This document shows positions 11,334 through 63,880 of a DNA stretch of 64,000 bases, piece by piece. The stretch comes from Macrostomum hystrix (Eukaryota > Animalia > Platyhelminthes), in NCBI GenBank assembly GCA_950097015.1, contig CATNEN010000003.1, positions 5,952,001 through 6,016,000 on the forward strand, written 5' to 3'. Each line of letters starts with the position of its first letter. The stretch's first letter is position 1. The notes beneath the pieces are model-generated. The model was not told the DNA's origin. It ran no database searches and was given only the letters and a program-made list of their open reading frames with translations. Made by a program: the position numbers and the translations under genes.

Positions 11334-11643
11334 TAGGGGCGAGTGGCAGAGCAGTTAATGCTTCTGCCTCTCGCACCAATGTCCCTGACCTCGATTCCGT
11401 GGAAAAGGCCACATTAAATTGGGGTCGAACCTCCAAGGCACAGTGAAGTGTACACTGCTTGACGATGAGGAAGTCAGGGCAGATGTACACACCTGCATGA
11501 GCGTATGGCTGCGTATAGTATCTGTATGCGTGTGTGCTCAGGAGTCAGCGGAATGGGCAGAATTGCCTCCTCGCTGGCTGCAGGTCTAGTGGCACCAAAT
11601 GATGTACTATTGCCTGTAGCCCTCCTGCAATTATTCTTGCGAT
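11334..11643 (+). mobile_element. SINE family B, with 10-bp TSD TAGTTACGAC
   Basis: tRNA-like head (GTGGCAGAGCAG, CCTCGATTCC) and a body shared with 53260-53614 and 57366-57495. TSD at 11324-11333 and 11644-11653. Inserted about 15 bp past the DEG/ENaC stop codon. Confidence 0.88.
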
Positions 11644-47600: not shown

Positions 47601-50559
47601 GATGGACAATTGGTAGCGACCTCCGTCTTGTTGACCCGGTCTCTCCAACTGGTTTGATAGAAACGCGAGGCCAATGGCCAGGACCTTAACAACAGGGGGG
47701 TATTTCAGATACGATTTTTTCTGTATGTATGTATTTCTGTATATAAATATTCGACCAATGGCCATGAAAACCCAGAAAACTGGTAGATATTTCCCGCTCT
47801 ATCCGATAAAATAACTTCCAGAATCACAAAAACATCGGCATCGAGATCTTCAACGATTCTAGACGGGGTATCTAATGGCAAGAAACTACTAATATAGGCA
47901 TCGGTTTCTGATCAGAAAATGTCATCATCTAAACACGCCAGCGTAATAATACATGTAATAATAATTTTTTTTTATTTATAATATTGTTATTTTTGCTCCT
48001 GCTTCTTCTTCTTCTTGGCGTTTATTCAATCTAGCTTTTTCATTTGGCTGCGAAGGAAAGTACGAGCTAATAAAAGCCAAAAAGGAATACATTTCAAGCA
48101 CTGACCCTCTACGTCGACGTCTGATCATTGTCGAGCAGTCGACTTTGACGCATGCTGGCCGAAGTTCACCAGATCGGCCTTGTCTCAGCACGGAATGCCA
48201 TTCCCCTGAACATTGGCTTCGCCTCCTATGTCGTTGCTGTCCGTCCGTTGGTGCCTTAACCGATGGCGTTGTTGGCAGGACAGCGGCGCATTGGGAACCA
48301 GTCAGTTGCCGGCATGCGCCCACGGTGCGATGAAAATAATCCGGCACTAGAGCTGGCGTAGAAGCGGAGCTACTGGGCGAGCAGAACCCAGTGCTGGATG
48401 TGCTATGGCAGTAGCGGGCAAACTCACAGCCGGCCAGGTGGCCCCAGAGCATCAGATCTGCTTGAGCATAGTTCGGCCGATACCAGCCGGAGTCTTCTAG
48501 CAGAGCCAGGGTGCCGCTGTCAAGCACACTCGCGGCCGGGCTTACCTGTTCAGCCGCCATCACCGATGACAGCATGAAGCCGGCGTCCCATGAAGTCCGC
48601 AGTCGGCGCAATCCTCGCCTGGACTGAAGCGGCAGGCCGCGGCTGCAGTTGAAGTGACTGGTGGCAAAGAGACGGACAGCCGGCGAGACTACAAAGCGTC
48701 CTCCTGAGTCGAGCAGTTCGCCTCTGCTAAGACTCATCCAGGTGTCATTGATGGCGTTGTAACGCTGGTACGTGCTCATAAGACGCCGCGAGAAGCCGAG
48801 CAAGCGTAGAAACTCAGCGAGGAGGCGCTGCAGGAAGCTGCCGCTCAACGATGCGCCTAAACTGACATCGTGAGGTCGCAGTAGTAATCGACCTGCAATC
48901 GGACGATTCACTCCAGGCTGCGAGGCGCAGTGTTGCGAGGCCATGCTGACGATTCCTTCCTCGTCTTCTAAGCCTTCCATTTCGTCTTCGCCAGCTTCGG
49001 ACTCTGGCTCGCCCTCCTCGTCATCGTCTGTCAGTGTTGGCGGCTCAGTCAGCGCACTGACGAACATCAGATAGCTCGCGTTGAGAGCGCCAGTGCCAGA
49101 TGGTATCAGCGTGGTCTTGACAGCATCAGTTGCCATTGCAGTGTCATTTTTTACTTGTATTGAATCGTTTGGCTGACTTAAGTGGTAGACTGCTAGTTCA
49201 GACAGGTACACATCGGGAATCTAAAATGACGATGACAATGAAGCTCCAGTTAACATAGATTCAAGAGGCCAACTTCAAAAGCCTAAAAAACGGTTCACAG
49301 TGACTCACCCGAAATGAATCTCGAAAACGCTTGCCTCCGCACTTCTCTCCGGTGTAGCTTGACATCAACTGACGACACCTCTTCGAATCCAACCATTCAG
49401 CGCAATAGGCTTTTGGTGAGCGACTAATTAGAAGAGGTGTCAGCTCCGGATTACCCATATGATGAGCTGTTACATGTGAAGGTTGTGCGATACTTCAATA
49501 AGTCACTTAATCAGCTAGCTGATTTCTACAGATTTACAGATGACAATGCATTGTCGCGATAGAGACACAACATACTCTTAGAGATGATACACAACAGACT
49601 CTCATAGATGATACACAACAGACTCTCATAGACTATACACAACAGACTCTCATAGATGATACACAACGGACTCTCATAGACGATACACAACGGACTCTCA
49701 TAGACGATACAGAACAGACTCGCATAGACGATACACAACAGACTCTCATAGACGATACACAACAGACTCTCATAGACGATACACAACAGACTCTCATAGA
49801 CGATACAGAACAGACTCGCATAGCCGATACACAACAGACTCTTAATGATGATACACAACGGACTCTCATAGACGATACACAACAGACTCTCATAGACGAT
49901 ACACAACAGACTCTCATAGACTATACACAACAGACTCTCATAGACGATACACAACAGCCTCTCATAGACGATACACAACAGACTCTCATAGACGATACAC
50001 AACAGACTCTCATAGACGATACACAACAGACTCTCATAGATGATACACAACAGACTCTCATAGACTATACACAACAGACTCTCATAGATGATACACAACA
50101 GACTCTCATAGACGATACACAACAGACTCTCATAGACGATACACAACAGACTCTCATAGACTATACACAACAGACTCTCATAGACGATACACAACAGCCT
50201 CTCATAGACGATACACAACAGACTCTCATAGACGATACACAACAGACTCTCTGGTATTATAGAAAACATTAATTTCATAGTAATGATCAAAATAATTGGC
50301 AGGACAAAAGTTAACAAGCCTTCAAAGAACCCTTACCAGTCAACAGCTGTTCTAGTCGCTCAGTCGCTGTATTCAACGCGTCGCTTAGAAGCAGTTTCTG
50401 TGAATCTGTCAGCACCAAATTGAGTTCATCCGTGTACACAACATGAATTCGCAATGAGGACCAAAAGCCATTGCTTTTGTTGACAACCTCTGCCGCAATT
50501 GAAATCCATGTAAATAATAAAGTAAATATAATTATTTTCTGATGAACTCTAGCCGTCAT
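44652..50559 (-). CDS. CIROP/leishmanolysin (peptidase M8)-like type I membrane protein, predicted catalytically inactive, about 786 aa, 8 exons
   Basis: Exons 50559-50337, 49466-49309, 49220-48106, 47684-47446, 47340-47299, 46769-46572, 45371-45272 and 44937-44652 (2361 nt). Signal peptide; M8 motifs RPIAG, LGFS and TLALLEDSGWYRPNY...MLWG; SEA-like VRAGSVI; TM IVGGAVGGFLVLGLLLTVSLIAI. Confidence 0.8.
45160..45250 (+). mobile_element. SINE family A, 5' head only
   Basis: GTAGCCTTGTGGTAAGGGCGTCGGACTC...GTTCGATTCC. Confidence 0.78.
45495..46460. repeat. 16-bp minisatellite family, switching from TCTGATCTCTCCCGTG to homogeneous TCTCATTCATCCCGTG
   Basis: About 55 copies in intron 6 of the M8-like gene. 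Confidence 0.97.
46830..47230 (-). mobile_element. SINE family A copy split by an insertion of about 290 bp
   Basis: GCACAGCCGCAGCTATT at 46837-46853 continues as GCTGCGAACAGCTGTTCAGTCCA...CTGGGGGC from about 47156. Confidence 0.6.
49580..50250. repeat. 24-bp minisatellite (TAGACGATACACAACAGACTCTCA)n
   Basis: Direct tandem copies in intron 1 of the M8-like gene. Confidence 0.96.
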
Positions 50560-51134
50560 TGACGACGGAATATGTAATTCCTTTAAAAAGAAGTTTCAAG
50601 CAATCTGGCAGTTCTCTTAAGGCTCGTATATTTCTCTCCGACTTCGTAGACGGTTTTGTGGCCTATTTTTTTCAACTTAAATGGATTAATGAATGACACT
50701 GCTATATTCTAAGCTTGAGACGAAGAGGAGACGGAGAAAAATATAGAGGGACAACGAATAAGAAAAGAGAGTTATATACTAGCTCGAATAAGCGAGCGCA
50801 GGAACGAACAATGGGCTGGCGAACAATGCTACGCTGGACTGGTTTCGAAGCAGGTTGGAAATGCTGAGTTTAGAAAGTTTCGATTCAAAGCAATGAATGA
50901 CATTCAAATAGGTGTGTTTAGCAAGGTTTATTGAGCTACACTGGCTGCAGAGAAAACTGGTAATGTGGACTAGTGCACCTGAAGCCAATTCTTGGCATAA
51001 ACTAGTAGCATAATTTTATTTCAACTCTGTCCTTCCTGTGTTCATGAGTTTCAATTCAGTATAACGGCAGACAGACTTGCAAAATATATTTGAGAGCTTA
51101 CGACAAAGTTAGATAGGTAGCTAGATAGATAAAG

Positions 51135-52130
51135 CTAGATAGACAGTGAGAATTCTAGCGAGAGACTGGGTGAGATACACAGTGAGAATTCTAGCGAGAG
51201 ACTGGGTGAGATAGACGGTGAGAATTCTGGAGAGAGACTGGGTGAGATAGACAGTGAGAATTCTGGAGAGAGACTGGGTGAGATAGACAGTGAGAATTCT
51301 GGAGAGAGACTGGGTGAGATAGACAGTGAGAATTCTAGCGAGAGACTGGGTGAGATAGACAGTGAGAATTCTAGCGAGAGACTGGGTGAGATAGACAGTG
51401 AGAATTCTGGAGAGAGACTGGGTGAGATAGACAGTGAGAATTCTGGAGAGAGACTGGGTGAGATAGACAGTGAGAATTCTGGAGAGAGACTGGGTGAGAT
51501 AGACAGTGAGAATTCTAGCGAGAGACTGGGTGAGATAGACAGTGAGAATTCTAGCGAGAGACTGGGTGAGATAGACAGTGAGAATTCTGGAGAGAGACTG
51601 GGTGAGATAGACAGTGAGAATTCTAGCAAGAGACTGGGTGAGATAGACAGTGAGATTTCTTGCGAGAGACTGTGTGAGATAGACAGTGAGAATTCTGGAG
51701 AGAGACTGGGTGAGATACACAGTGAGAATTCTAGCGAGAGACTGGGTGAGATAGACAGTGAGAATTCTAGCGAGAGACTGGGTGAGATAAACAGTGAGAA
51801 CTCTTGCGAGAGACTGGGTTAGATAGACAGTGAGAATTCTGGCGAGAGACTGGGTGAGATTGACAGTGAGAATTCTGGCGAGAGACTGGGTGAGATAGAC
51901 AGTGAGAATTCTAGCAAGAGACTGGGTGAGATAGACAGTGAGATTTCTTGCGAGAGACTGGGTGAGATAGACAGTGAGAATTCTAGCAAGAGACTGGGTG
52001 AGATAGACAGTGAGATTTCTTGCGAGAGACTGGGTGAGATAGACAGTGAGAATTCTAGCGAGAGACTGGATAGACAGTGAGATTTCTTGCGAGAGACTGG
52101 GTGAGATAGACAGTGAGAATTCTGGAGATA
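51135..52130. repeat. 36-bp minisatellite (GAGAGACTGGGTGAGATAGACAGTGAGAATTCTAGC)n
   Basis: About 27 direct copies. Confidence 0.96.
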
Positions 52131-52753
52131 GATATAGCAAGTAAAACACATCAAAATTATTGGCAGACAAAATACTGAGATGTGTTACAGATAAATAGAT
52201 GGTTTTTAGCTTGTATCTAGATATAAAGTTTTTGCTCTTAATTGTAAGCTCTTATTCATTGTAATGTTTTCGACCTCTAGTTGCTCATTGTATTTTTACA
52301 TTTGAAGGGCCGAGCAAGTCGCTCTTTTATTTTCAGTGTTTTCTTGACTTGCTAATTTGAAAAAAGAGTTCAAGTTTTGCTTTGTGTTTCGATGCTTTTT
52401 GTTTGCTACAAATAAGAGACTCAAACTCAAAGACAGGTATAATAATTTTTAATCTTCTTTAATTTGCAACAAAAACTCGTTATTTTTCAGTCGGAACATA
52501 TCCGATGCGCAACTACAAGGAGGAAATTTTTTGAGTGTGAGCTTGATTAGTATTTTTTTTCCATTTTACCAATGCAGGTAATTGCATTAACAAACCTCAA
52601 TGATACTTAACGAGCTATACAATCTACTGGCTAATACATTGCTCTGTGTGGTAGTCATTGACAACGATGACAACAAATAGACCGATAGAGACTGTATATC
52701 GCAGTAGGATTTTACACGTGTAGCTGCCATTTTGAGACTAATATTAAATAGTC

Positions 52754-53874
52754 ATGAATGTGCTTCTACTGCTAGTCGCAGGCATGTTTGTCACTGCCTT
52801 TGCAGTGTTCAATCAGGACTTTCTGAGCTTCGAGAATGCCTTACTGTGCATGCGCAGTCAGTTCACAGAGACCCACCCGGACATTAGCTCGGAGAGGCAT
52901 TGCGCGATGCTGTGCAGAAACGAGACCCGCTGTCAGGCCTTCAGCCTGATCGACGGACCCTGTCAGTTGTTCGTGTTCGACAAGTGCAGCAAGAGAGTGC
53001 GCCATTGTCAAAACTGCACCCGCAGGGGTCAGGTGTTTATGAAAAAGAAGCCAAACGGTTTGTTGCCTCGGACCAGCCTGTGCCCCAACGGATTCGACAC
53101 CGACTTTTGCGGCACCAAATACGGCATCTACCGGCGCGTTACCAGCTGGGACCAGGCCAAGAGTATCATAGAAACTAAGCCAGGCCTAGTCATCATGGCC
53201 GATGTTGAGGACGCTGCGGAGCTGAACCACATTTACGCCATAATTGTAAGGTACGGTTGAGTGGCAGAGCGGTTAACGCGTTTGCCTCTCGCACCAAGGT
53301 CCCTAAGTTCGATTCCACGGCGAGGCCACATTTATTTGGGGCGCAGCCGCGGAGAGAAGGCTTTGGGGCTTGTCGTGCAATTGACGCCCTTGAGGGCCAA
53401 CCTCCAAGACACAGTGAAGTGTACACTGCCTGACGATGAGAAAGTCAGGGCAGATGTACACACCTGTGTGAGCGAATGCCTGCGTACAGTATTTGTGTGC
53501 GTGTGTGCTCAGGAGTCAGCGAAATGGGCAGAATTGCCTCCTCGCTGGCTGCGGGTCTAGTGTCACCAAATGATGTGCCATTGCCCGCAGCCCACCTGCA
53601 ATTATTATTATTATTAAGGTACGGTTGGGATCTTGTCCTGCTTGGTGGCATTCAACCGTCTGGCAGTCAGGAGCCAGCAGGCGGCTGGCGCTGGAGTAGC
53701 TGCGACACCGCCATCGAAATGAACAGCGGCCTGTGGAGAATAAATGAGCCCAACAATTTCGGATCAGGTGAAAATTTGGTGGCGATTCATCACGAGACTC
53801 CGGCGCTTAACGATGACTCGTTTTCGAGTACCTACACTGGCGTCTTGGCGGAGTGTGTGTCGCCGTTCGACTAG
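52754..53874 (+). CDS. Secreted PAN/apple + C-type lectin protein, about 250 aa, interrupted by a SINE B insertion
   Basis: Signal peptide, PAN motif CAMLCRNETRCQAF...C, and CTLD (CPNGF, SWDQAK, GGWRW, W..NEPNN, ND, C). Removing 53251-53618 gives a 753-nt intact ORF. Confidence 0.8.
53260..53614 (+). mobile_element. SINE family B, with 13-bp TSD TAAGGTACGGTTG and (ATT)n tail
   Basis: TSD at 53247-53259 and 53615-53627. A box GTGGCAGAGCGG and B box GTTCGATTCC. Confidence 0.92.
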
Positions 53875-54099
53875 ATGACAAGGTGAATCGCGCAGCGAGC
53901 GCAACGAGCGTAACTGAAATACTCAAGAACTGATTCTATTGTTTTGCTTTTGAAAGATTTTCAACGAGCTGTACCCAAGGACTACTGGAAATAGAAGTAA
54001 CTAACACTAACAGAAGATCTGTCACTGATCTATAACGGCTTTCTAAGAAGCGTTTTCTGATAAATCTCAAAAAAAATAAAAAACTGATTTCGAAAAATA

Positions 54100-54780
54100 A
54101 ATCTGGAAGTTATTTCTAAGAAATCTCTGACCGAATCGATAATTTGTTTCTAAGCAGTGTCTGACAGAATCAAAAAGTGATTTTTAAGAAATCTCTGACC
54201 GAATCATAAGTGGTTTCTAGGCAATGTCAGACCGATTCAATATGTAGTTTCTAAGAAATCTATGACCCAATCATTAAGTGGTTTCGAAGAAATCTCTTAC
54301 CGAATCAATAAGTAGTTTGTAGGAAATCTCTGACCGAATCGACGAGTGATTTCTAAGAAATCTCTGACCGAATCAATAATTGGTTTCTAAGAAATCTCTG
54401 ACCGAATCAATAATCGGTTTCTAAGAAATCTCTGACCGAATCAATAATCGGTTTCTAAGAAATCTCTGACCGAATCAATAATTGGTTTCTAAGAAATCTC
54501 TGACCGAATCAATAATCGGTTTCTAAGAAATCTCTGACCGAATCAATAATCGGTTTCTAAGAAATCTCTGACCGAATCAATAATTGGTTTCTAAGAAATC
54601 TCTGACCGAATCAATAATTGGTTTCTAAGAAATCTCTGACCGAATCAATAACTGGTTTCTAAGAAATCTCTGACAGTATAGATGAGTGATTTCTAAGTAG
54701 TCTCTAAGAGAATAGATTTTTTGTTTTCTAACAAATCTTTGAACTGATTTTTAAGGAAATCTCTGACCGAATCCATAAAA
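54100..54780. repeat. 34-bp minisatellite (TTTCTAAGAAATCTCTGACCGAATCAATAATTGG)n
   Basis: Direct copies with a homogeneous core and diverged edges. Confidence 0.93.
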
Positions 54781-57258: not shown

Positions 57259-57365
57259 ATTGTGGATGAGGGGCTGTGCGGTCTGATGCATTTTGGCACT
57301 TACACCACGGTCCTTAAGCTCCACTTTGCTGCAAGTACAGTGAGAGTGTTTACTACCTGAAAATA

Positions 57366-57495
57366 AGAAAGTCAGGGCAGATGTACACGCCTGTGTGTGA
57401 GTGTGTGCTGAGGAGTCAACGGAATGGGCAGAATTGCCTCCTCGCTGGCTGCGGGGTCAAGTGTCACCAAATGATGCGTCATTGCCCGCAGCCTG
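57366..57495 (+). mobile_element. SINE family B, 5'-truncated and internally deleted
   Basis: AGTCAGGGCAGATGTACAC...GGCAGAATTGCCTCCTCGCTGGCTGCGGG...CCCGCAGCC. Confidence 0.85.
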
Positions 57496-57785: not shown

Positions 57786-58029
57786 AGTTCCAAACACAAT
57801 AATTCTCTGTTTTACAACTTATTCGGCAGCAATCCCAACCGCTTTTTTGTAAGACAGGTCAATCTACGGGTTCCAGCTTTTGTATAAAATGTTTAAATTT
57901 TTACTCCCATGAGTATCGGTAAAGTGTTGGCTACCGCAATCTGACGCTGCTCAAGCTATGAGTTGTGTCTAGTTGACTCGATTTGAGATGCTCGACCATC
58001 TTAAACACGGAAGATATTAGACACATTAG

Positions 58030-58848
58030 AGATGAGACAGTGAACAGATGAGACACGGGAGAGATAAAACACGGGAGAGACTAAACACAGGGGAGATGAG
58101 ACACGGGAGAGACTAAACACAGGGGAGATGAGACACAGGAGAGATTTAACACAGGGGAGATAAGACACGGGAGAGATTAAACACAGGGGAGATAAGACAC
58201 GGGAGAGATTAAACCCAGGAGAGATGAGACACGGGAGAGATTAAACACATGGGAGATGAGACACGAGAGAGACTAAACACAGGGGAGATAAGACACGGGA
58301 GAGATTAAACACAGGGGAGATGAGACACGGGAGAGATTTAACACAGGGGAGATAAGACACGGGAGAGACTAAACACAGGGGAGATAAGACACGGGAGAGA
58401 TTAAACCCAGGAGAGATGAGACACGGGAGAGATTAAACACATGGGAGATGAGACACGGGAGAGACTAAACACAGGGGAGATAAGACACGGGAGAGATTAA
58501 ACACAGGGGAGATGAGACACGGGAGAGATTTAACACAGGGGAGATAAGACACGGGAGAGACTAAACACAGGGGAGATGAGACACGTGAGAGATTTAACAC
58601 AGGGGAGATAAGACACGGGCGAGATTAAACACAGGGGAGATAAGACACGGAGAGATTTAACACAGGGGAGATGAGACACGTGAGAGATTTAACACAGGGG
58701 AGATGAGACACGTGAAAGGTTTAGCACAGGGAGATGAGACACGAGCGAGATTAAACACAGGAGAGATGAGACACGGGCGAGATTAAACACAGGGGAGATG
58801 AGACACGTGAAAGATAATACACGGGAGAGATGAGACAGGGGAGAGATG
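58030..58848. repeat. 16-bp family in reverse orientation, as a 32-bp dimer (GAGATTAAACACAGGG-GAGATAAGACACGGGA)n
   Basis: Reverse complement of the TCTCATCTCTCCCGTG unit, alternating two variants. Confidence 0.93.
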
Positions 58849-58910: not shown

Positions 58911-62683
<3,773 letters not shown>

Positions 62684-63124: not shown

Positions 63125-63880
63125 ATAGGAAGAGGAGGGAGGAAGGGGAGAGAGGAAGGGAGAGAGGAAGAAGAGGGAGGAAGGGGAGATAGGAAGAGGA
63201 GGGAGGAAGAGGAGAGAAGAAAGGGAGAGAGGAAGGGGAGAGAGGAAGGGGAGAGAGGAAAGGGAGAGAGGAAAGGGAGAGAGGAAGGAGAGAGGAAGGA
63301 GAGAGGAAAGGGAGAGAGGAAAGTGAGAGAAGAAAGGGGAGAGGAAATTGAGAAAGGATTGAGAGAAAAAGGGAGAGAGGAAAGGGAGAGAGGAAAGGGA
63401 GAGAGGAAGGAGAGAGGAAGGAGAGAGGAAAGGGAGAGAGGAAAGGGAGAGAGGAAGGAGAGAGGATTGAGAGAGGAAAGGGAGAGAGGAAGGAGAGAGG
63501 ATTGAGAGAGGAAAGGGAGAGAGGAAGAAGAGAGGATTGAGAGAGGAAAGGGAGAGAGGAAGGAGAGAGGATTGAGAGAGGAAAGGGAGAGAGGAAGGAG
63601 AGAGGAAGGAGAGAGGAAAGGGAGAGAGGAAAGGGAGAGAGGAAAGGGAGAGAGGAAGGAGAGAGGAAGGAGAGAGGAAAGGGAGAGAGGAAAGGGAGAG
63701 AGGAAGGAGAGAGGATTGAGAGAGGAAAGGGAGAGAGGAAGGAGAGAGGAAGGAGAGAGGAAAGGGAGAGAGGAAAGGGAGAGAGGAAAGGGAGAGAGGA
63801 AGGAGAGAGGAAGGAGAGAGGAACGGGAGAGAGGAAGGAGAGAGGATGGGGAGGGAGGAAGGGGAGAGAGGAAAGCGGAA
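63125..63880. repeat. Polypurine tandem repeat (GGAGAGAGGAAAG)n in a CDKL intron
   Basis: Direct observation. Confidence 0.93.

Follow-up and report, generated by a model that had tools for sequence, protein, structure and literature searches.

A SINE between two copies of its target site in a lectin-like gene

The locus is a protein-coding gene on the forward strand of the window - by which we mean the whole stretch of 64,000 nt analysed here - and its coding sequence is split in two by a SINE. Coding part 1 (52754-53250, 497 nt, ending in AAG) is predicted to specify a signal peptide, a PAN/apple-like module and the first half of a C-type-lectin-like domain, while coding part 2 (53619-53874, 256 nt including the stop TAG at 53872-53874) would supply the second half of that domain with an EPN and an LNDD motif. 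Between them lies an insert of 355 nt (53260-53614), a tRNA-like SINE in sense orientation with a box A-like TGGCAGAGCGG and a box B-like GTTCGATTCC readable in its head and with an (ATT)5 tail at 53600-53614, so placed that it falls in the middle of the lectin-like domain and upstream of EPN. The insert is flanked by two perfect copies of a 13-nt target-site duplication, TAAGGTACGGTTG, at 53247-53259 and 53615-53627, and the bases next to these copies are unlike (G/T on the 5' side, A/G on the 3' side). Transcript-like contigs from three samples (X2, X4 and X5, see below) place on 52733-54100 of the same strand.

Left unspliced, a message from this gene would be read from ATG 52754 to a TGA at 53258-53260, an ORF of 168 codons that ends at 53260 as the original prediction had called it. 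Its further claim of a SINE held between two duplication copies is borne out as well, with TAAGGTACGGTTG on both sides of an insert that proves to be a high-copy repeat, and so is its choice of splice sites at 53251 and 53618: the duplication permits 14 equivalent cuts, yet just one of them, 53251-53618, removes a segment that starts with GT (53251-52) and ends with AG (53617-18), as U2-type GT-AG introns do. This candidate newborn intron measures 368 nt. Its donor (AAG/GTACGG, the slash marking the cut between 53250 and 53251) lies in the left duplication copy, and its acceptor (ATTATTAAG/G, cut between 53618 and 53619) is made by the (ATT)n tail together with the right copy. The intron would be of phase 2 and split an AGG codon, in which the frames of the two coding parts join; their lengths (497 + 256 nt) add up to the 753-nt ORF that the prediction had expected to be restored, with the frame from 53619 ending at TAG 53872-53874 and with the EPN motif, as foreseen, found in the downstream piece. 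An additional argument, that the flanking exons are free of decay, carries no weight: the insertion (see below) is too young for decay under either reading of the locus, and the intact exons are therefore not evidence of selection.

With either coding piece as query, about 150 matches appear elsewhere in the genome, almost every one in a single open frame of ~240-330 codons, which makes the family both large and intronless. The best paralogue match to the coding pieces is 56-57% identical, and the closest paralogue (L015:1243-1980, 246 aa) is colinear across the insertion point with no gap; a close paralogue or a second copy of the gene with an empty site was not found in the assembly. Most members lie in tandem clusters (for example C7:2.50-2.55 Mb, C7:2.71-2.72 Mb, C7:2.90-2.91 Mb and C3:8.1-8.8 Mb), and a few of the lectin-like paralogues carry internal stops. 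Protein comparisons were made coding piece by coding piece and on intact paralogues. Pfam returned weak PAN matches only and no Lectin_C match for either coding piece or for the intact paralogue L015:1243-1980, and a homologous-protein search with the 168-aa upstream ORF found no relative at E up to 1e-10; nor was an annotated product of full length traced. A profile built from 11 paralogues matches, among PDB entries and over profile positions 105-243, codakine (E 6.6e-4), L-selectin and other selectins, mosquito C-type lectins and langerin; a PAN domain (MIC5, E 1.2e-3) is matched by the N-terminal part of the profile. At the sugar-binding triplet, different paralogues have EPN, QPD, QPS, EPS or QPT, and LND follows. 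Judged by such similarities, weak as they are, the gene is a divergent member of the secreted PAN plus C-type-lectin-like proteins.

Long minisatellite arrays with units of 36 nt and 34 nt bracket the gene (window 51000-52190 and 54138-54780), and further tandem arrays are present at 49445-50416, 57909-58700, 60811-61400, 61730-62550 and 63128-63750. Altogether the window is unusually rich in tandem arrays, whose units range from 8 to 36 nt.

The SINE family and the age of the window copy

A genome search with the SINE gave 3497 first-look candidates, and all of the 40 copies that were scored (40/40) turned out to be 96-100% identical along their whole length. When 32 copies, the one in the window among them, were extracted with their flanks and aligned, the family consensus came to 362 nt. 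The tails are (ATT)n of variable length, and the target-site duplications differ at each locus, most being 10-15 nt long (8-20 as the script called them). Being short, free of ORFs and high in copy number, with variable duplications and a simple-repeat 3' tail, the element has the hallmarks of a LINE-mobilised SINE. In its head, ARAGORN called no tRNA and Rfam gave no match at E up to 1; nor did the SINE match anything in a phage collection.

The consensus starts with GGGGGTG followed by AGTGGCAGAGCGG and is frequently preceded by extra G residues. The window copy is without these first 7 nt, GGGGGTG, and is either 5'-truncated by 7 nt or joined to its target via microhomology (GGTTG vs GGGTG). 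What this costs the element is of some consequence below: the full-length head, GGGGGTGAGTGGC (consensus positions 1-13), carries a consensus-like 5' splice site, GG/GTGAGT, and this head donor is destroyed in the window copy by the 5' truncation.

Six differences set the window copy apart from the 32-copy consensus. Five of them are common to 6-14 other copies and hence mark a SINE subfamily. The sixth is private, an A at 53594 where 31/31 other copies have T. One private substitution in 355 nt is all that has accumulated, which argues that the insertion is very young; the same substitution makes it unlikely that the insertion was born in the laboratory within a few hundred generations.

Older relatives of the element occur elsewhere in the window, namely a copy or fragment at 11342-11638 (two parts, of 90% and 82% identity) and another at 57337-57493 (77% identical). 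Two arrangements on contig 14 may be recorded here. At G000:C14:899835-900043 (L003), four identical 38-nt matches with a spacing of 57 nt, each made of AAGGTCCCTGAGC and GGGGGGTG followed by the SINE head, form a short tandem array of SINE 5' ends that adjoins a full copy, which is itself inserted in another SINE. Further along, four copies (G000:C14:1374847, 1481871, 1581982 and 1664186) stand 82-107 kb apart and share identical short tails and right flanks, which suggests a four-fold segmental repeat on this contig.

SINE-containing DNA and SINE-less RNA-like contigs

Machtx_v2, the M. hystrix assembly of Wiberg et al. 2023 (PMC10468722), has 220453370 bases in 42 contigs and was built from ~700 pooled worms of the inbred line SR1, for which the predicted F is ~0.998. 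SR1 also gave the RNA-seq of Brand et al. 2020, which used pools of 60 adults, hatchlings and regenerants (PMC7336406). The M. hystrix transcriptome of Brand et al. 2022 is listed as SR1 too, and in the accessible portion of the data table of that paper we saw no other M. hystrix RNA set from before 2023. The 2023 project also includes RNA of wild-caught single worms, e.g. from Finland. We compared positions 52250-54100 of the window with assembled Logan contigs (k=31) of the samples X1, X2, X4 and X5; such contigs drop rare variants, so that a minor empty allele in a DNA pool or an RNA retaining the intron could go unseen. Two of the samples, X1 and X2, belong to one study (P1; X1 dates from 2023), and the other two, X4 and X5, to another of 2020 (P2).

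X1 amounts to 197 Mb of contigs and behaves as genomic DNA. Its contigs span 52250-53284 and 53582-54100 with zero differences from the window; they cross 53259/53260 on one side and 53614/53615 on the other and end only inside the repeat, with no branching at the points where an allele without the SINE would split the k=31 graph. Their depths, 72.5 and 84.3, fall in the single-copy range, whose ceiling we calculated as ~93 at most (computed from the reported 132x of 101-nt reads and an assumed k of 31). Since contigs run unbranched through both junctions, the insertion looks fixed or nearly fixed in the X1 DNA pool, within the limits that contig data set.

X2, X4 and X5 present another picture. 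Their contig totals are 33-44 Mb, and they have zero cover over 52250-52683, X2 alone beginning before 52746, while most of the gene is covered (X4 52753-54013, X5 52862-53920, X2 52733-53246 plus 53615-54100). Cover of nearly the whole gene with none further upstream, together with totals of this size, makes all three RNA-seq-like; the sample kinds on record are '?' for X4 and X5 and 'DNA?' for X2. What these samples have in common, X5 probably included, is a gene devoid of the SINE. In X2 this is explicit: record 9, a contig of 1022 nt, matches 54100-53615 with its positions 12-497 and 53246-52733 with its positions 498-1011, thus joining the flanks at adjacent positions (497/498) with a single copy of the duplication and no SINE. 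For X4 it follows from depth arithmetic. Record 22, a 216-nt contig, places 166 nt on 53615-53780 and has 50 further letters, and the depth of 4.56 in the bin 53180-53241 equals 3.8x33/62 + 3.5x45/62, so that the 50 letters sit at 53197-53246, i.e. in the joined form. X5 record 24 terminates at 53246 with 36 further letters and is probably the same joined form. At k=31 a 13-nt repeat cannot bring about a spurious join, and the SINE-less junction must therefore be covered by real reads. The junction contig of X4, moreover, has a depth of 3.5 next to 3.8 and 4.2 for the exon contigs, and from this near-equality we take the joined form to be the main one. The junction at 53250/53619 that the original prediction had named for an RNA check is hence recovered as a direct join of 53246 and 53615, seen outright in X2, worked out from depths in X4 and probable in X5, and the joined contigs hold the in-frame product, not that of a frameshifting donor whose sole use the prediction had counted against an intron.

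SINE sequence as such is abundant in these three samples, with a summed contig depth in the thousands vs 3-10 for the host gene, which indicates that many SINE copies are transcribed or embedded in transcripts.

The frameshifting donor just mentioned, GTAAGG upstream of the in-frame one, had been thought the stronger of the two. Counted against the general consensus MAG/GTRAGT, the upstream ATT/GTAAGG matches at 6/9 and the duplication donor AAG/GTACGG at 7/9, so the in-frame donor is not the weaker. Use of the upstream site would take out five more bases, a form absent from the joined contigs. The acceptor side is less convincing. AAG is an uncommon acceptor, and a competing CAG lies 28 nt upstream at 53588-53590; the (ATT)5 tail is two-thirds T and offers no clear pyrimidine tract ahead of the acceptor, and a yUnAy branch-point match is absent from the last 40 nt before it. 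Between the competing CAG and the acceptor, 24 nt short of the latter, sits the private A of 53594. Our own survey of splice sites, from myosin and chaperonin exons, yielded about three clean introns only, all of them in myosin: inferred in the genome, these measure 76-881 nt, have CAG or TAG acceptors and are likewise without marked pyrimidine tracts, the sample being too small to say more. Relative to that range, 368 nt is an ordinary intron size.

How the SINE-less contigs are to be read depends on whose RNA they represent, since a spliced mRNA and an empty-site allele would be identical in sequence; RNA data alone cannot separate the two, and RNA and DNA of the same genotype are needed. 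Here the samples differ in what they can tell. X2 record 9 departs from the window at ~6 positions in ~1000 nt (including 52770, 52783, 53893 and 54069), and X2 is therefore another haplotype, probably from a wild worm, that may simply lack the insertion. It is thus uninformative on splicing. Two of its other features may be noted in passing. The T>C at 52770 replaces Leu (CTG) by Pro (CCG) at codon 6, within the signal peptide, and the difference at 52783 is synonymous; and record 9 ceases to match the genome at 52733, 21 nt upstream of the ATG, and goes on for 11 further letters that might belong to a trans-spliced leader or to an exon further upstream. X4 and X5, on the other hand, are identical to the assembly at every covered base, X4 including 52770, 52783 and 53893 and X5 including 53893. 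From this match of haplotypes and from the publication record we infer that P2, with X4 and X5, in all likelihood represents the 2020 RNA-seq of SR1. If so, either the SINE is spliced, or the worms that gave the RNA lacked an insertion present in every one of the worms later used for DNA.

We consider the first of these probable, i.e. that the SINE is spliced out as a newborn intron, 53251-53618; its removal at the RNA level hinges on X4 and X5 being, as inferred, RNA of worms that carry the insertion. The second amounts to a polymorphic null allele, in which this lectin copy is cut short at 168 aa by the SINE, contigs without the SINE go back to the ancestral empty site and no splicing takes place. 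There is something to be said for it. Besides the sequence identity of empty site and spliced product and the weak AAG acceptor, the copy is very young, and young insertions are commonly polymorphic; with more than 150 paralogues the loss of one would be cheap; the ~6 differences of X2 make it quite possible that some haplotypes of the species are free of the SINE; and the sample kinds of X2, X4 and X5 are guessed rather than firmly recorded. Yet the X1 DNA contigs pass unbroken and with no alternative letters through both points at which the graph ought to branch, and X4 and X5 agree with the SR1 haplotype wherever they cover it. In addition, the M. hystrix RNA-seq from before 2023 is, according to the papers, from SR1, where an F of ~0.998 leaves negligible residual heterozygosity. 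A null allele would thus require an insertion born in the laboratory to have swept the culture in a few years, and against this speaks the private substitution. So to our minds the null allele is an unlikely account of the locus.

Perfect direct repeats that flank a structured element are a classic setting for template-switching artefacts of reverse transcriptase, and the 13-nt repeats around the structured, tRNA-like SINE RNA could in principle have produced an apparent deletion in the library; but such artefacts are minor species, whereas the X4 junction is about as deep as the exons (on which ground we reject this explanation), a single X2 contig spans the whole gene, the same junction recurs in three samples of two studies and no exon-to-SINE contig is among the pieces listed for the RNA-like runs, all of which renders it highly improbable.

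Relation to known intron-making elements

If the SINE is spliced as a newborn intron, the course of events may be pictured as follows. The gene, coding for a PAN plus C-type-lectin-like protein in one exon, would have received a young tRNA-like SINE by retroposition in the sense direction, and a 13-nt duplication beginning with TAAGGT would have arisen on integration. Of its two copies, the left one would then read AAG/GTACGG, a good U1-type donor, and the right one, directly behind the (ATT)n tail, would read ATTATTAAG/G, an acceptor. By taking out 53251-53618, the spliceosome would remove the element together with one duplication copy, so that the mRNA recovers exactly the reading frame from before the insertion. 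The insertion would have been an intron from birth, in an otherwise intronless gene family, and the 5' truncation would have removed the competing family head donor GG/GTGAGT. This loss of GTGAGT may have been of help, and the private A may have contributed a branch point 24 nt ahead of the acceptor.

The duplication of an AGGT proto-splice site is a known route to new introns, covered by proto-splice-site and tandem-duplication models. Recent intron gains in Daphnia are said to show short direct repeats. As in the AGGT model, a duplicated AG/GT stands here on either side of the candidate intron, whose excision would give back the original frame exactly. In that model, however, the duplication is a tandem genomic one or arises from double-strand-break repair, whereas here its source would be a SINE inserting by target-primed reverse transcription, and a mobile element fills the space between the repeats. 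For the proto-splice-site idea, Dibb and Newman are cited in PMC3488318.

Introners, i.e. transposable elements that create spliceosomal introns as they insert, were first described in Micromonas and Aureococcus and are now reported from 201 species (PMC12130899, PMC11282704). Non-LTR retrotransposons make up ~5% of the classified introner families (PMC12130899), and single introns derived from retroposons are on record (PMC11282704). We found no report of SINE-derived introns in Macrostomum in the literature. Our candidate resembles introners in being a copy of a high-copy, non-autonomous element that sits in coding sequence and would be removed as an intron, and in that its target-site duplication supplies splice-site sequence with no need for later mutation. 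The Micromonas model places one splice site in the element and one in the duplication (PMC11282704), while both lie in the duplication and its junction with the tail here. Other differences are that the host is a flatworm and that the M. hystrix element is an ordinary tRNA-like SINE which is not gene-specialised, the sampled copies being mostly non-genic.

Could the SINE family as a whole be a retroposon introner in an animal? It is, like introner families, made of many near-identical copies. Its duplications frequently start with TA, and a (T)AAGG start is seen in 4/28 readable young copies, much more often than a fixed tetramer would turn up by chance. Such an integration preference, combined with the (ATT)n tail, would make a predictable share of sense insertions instantly spliceable, with the window copy as a member of zero age. 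A test for enrichment of AGGT-duplication SINEs in coding sequence had also been proposed at the outset. Copies whose duplication starts with AAGGT were collected through 35 matches to a head pattern and 19 to a tail pattern, and in the approximately 45 copies inspected we saw no sign of such an enrichment: a long ORF was present at one locus only (L060), where the SINE lies 32 codons from the ORF end, near the C-terminus, and is uninformative. A 78%-identical SINE with a 16-nt duplication at C3:15.38 Mb, considered as a guide to AAG acceptors, adds nothing, its AG/GT being on the opposite strand. We therefore put the introner nature of the family forward as a tentative proposal that we ourselves think rather doubtful.

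Introns made by transposons are already established, and the SINE copy in the window, read as a spliced one, is an unusually young further case. Where the origin of animal introns is mostly inferred from old events, the element, a perfect duplication, intronless paralogues and SINE-less RNA can here be read together, and in a flatworm that is inbred and cultured in the laboratory. If our reading is true, an ordinary exonic SINE insertion need not be a null mutation, a target duplication with AG/GT would make an intron without further mutation, and a retroposon route in a bilaterian would join a picture that is dominated by the DNA-transposon introners of protists and fungi.
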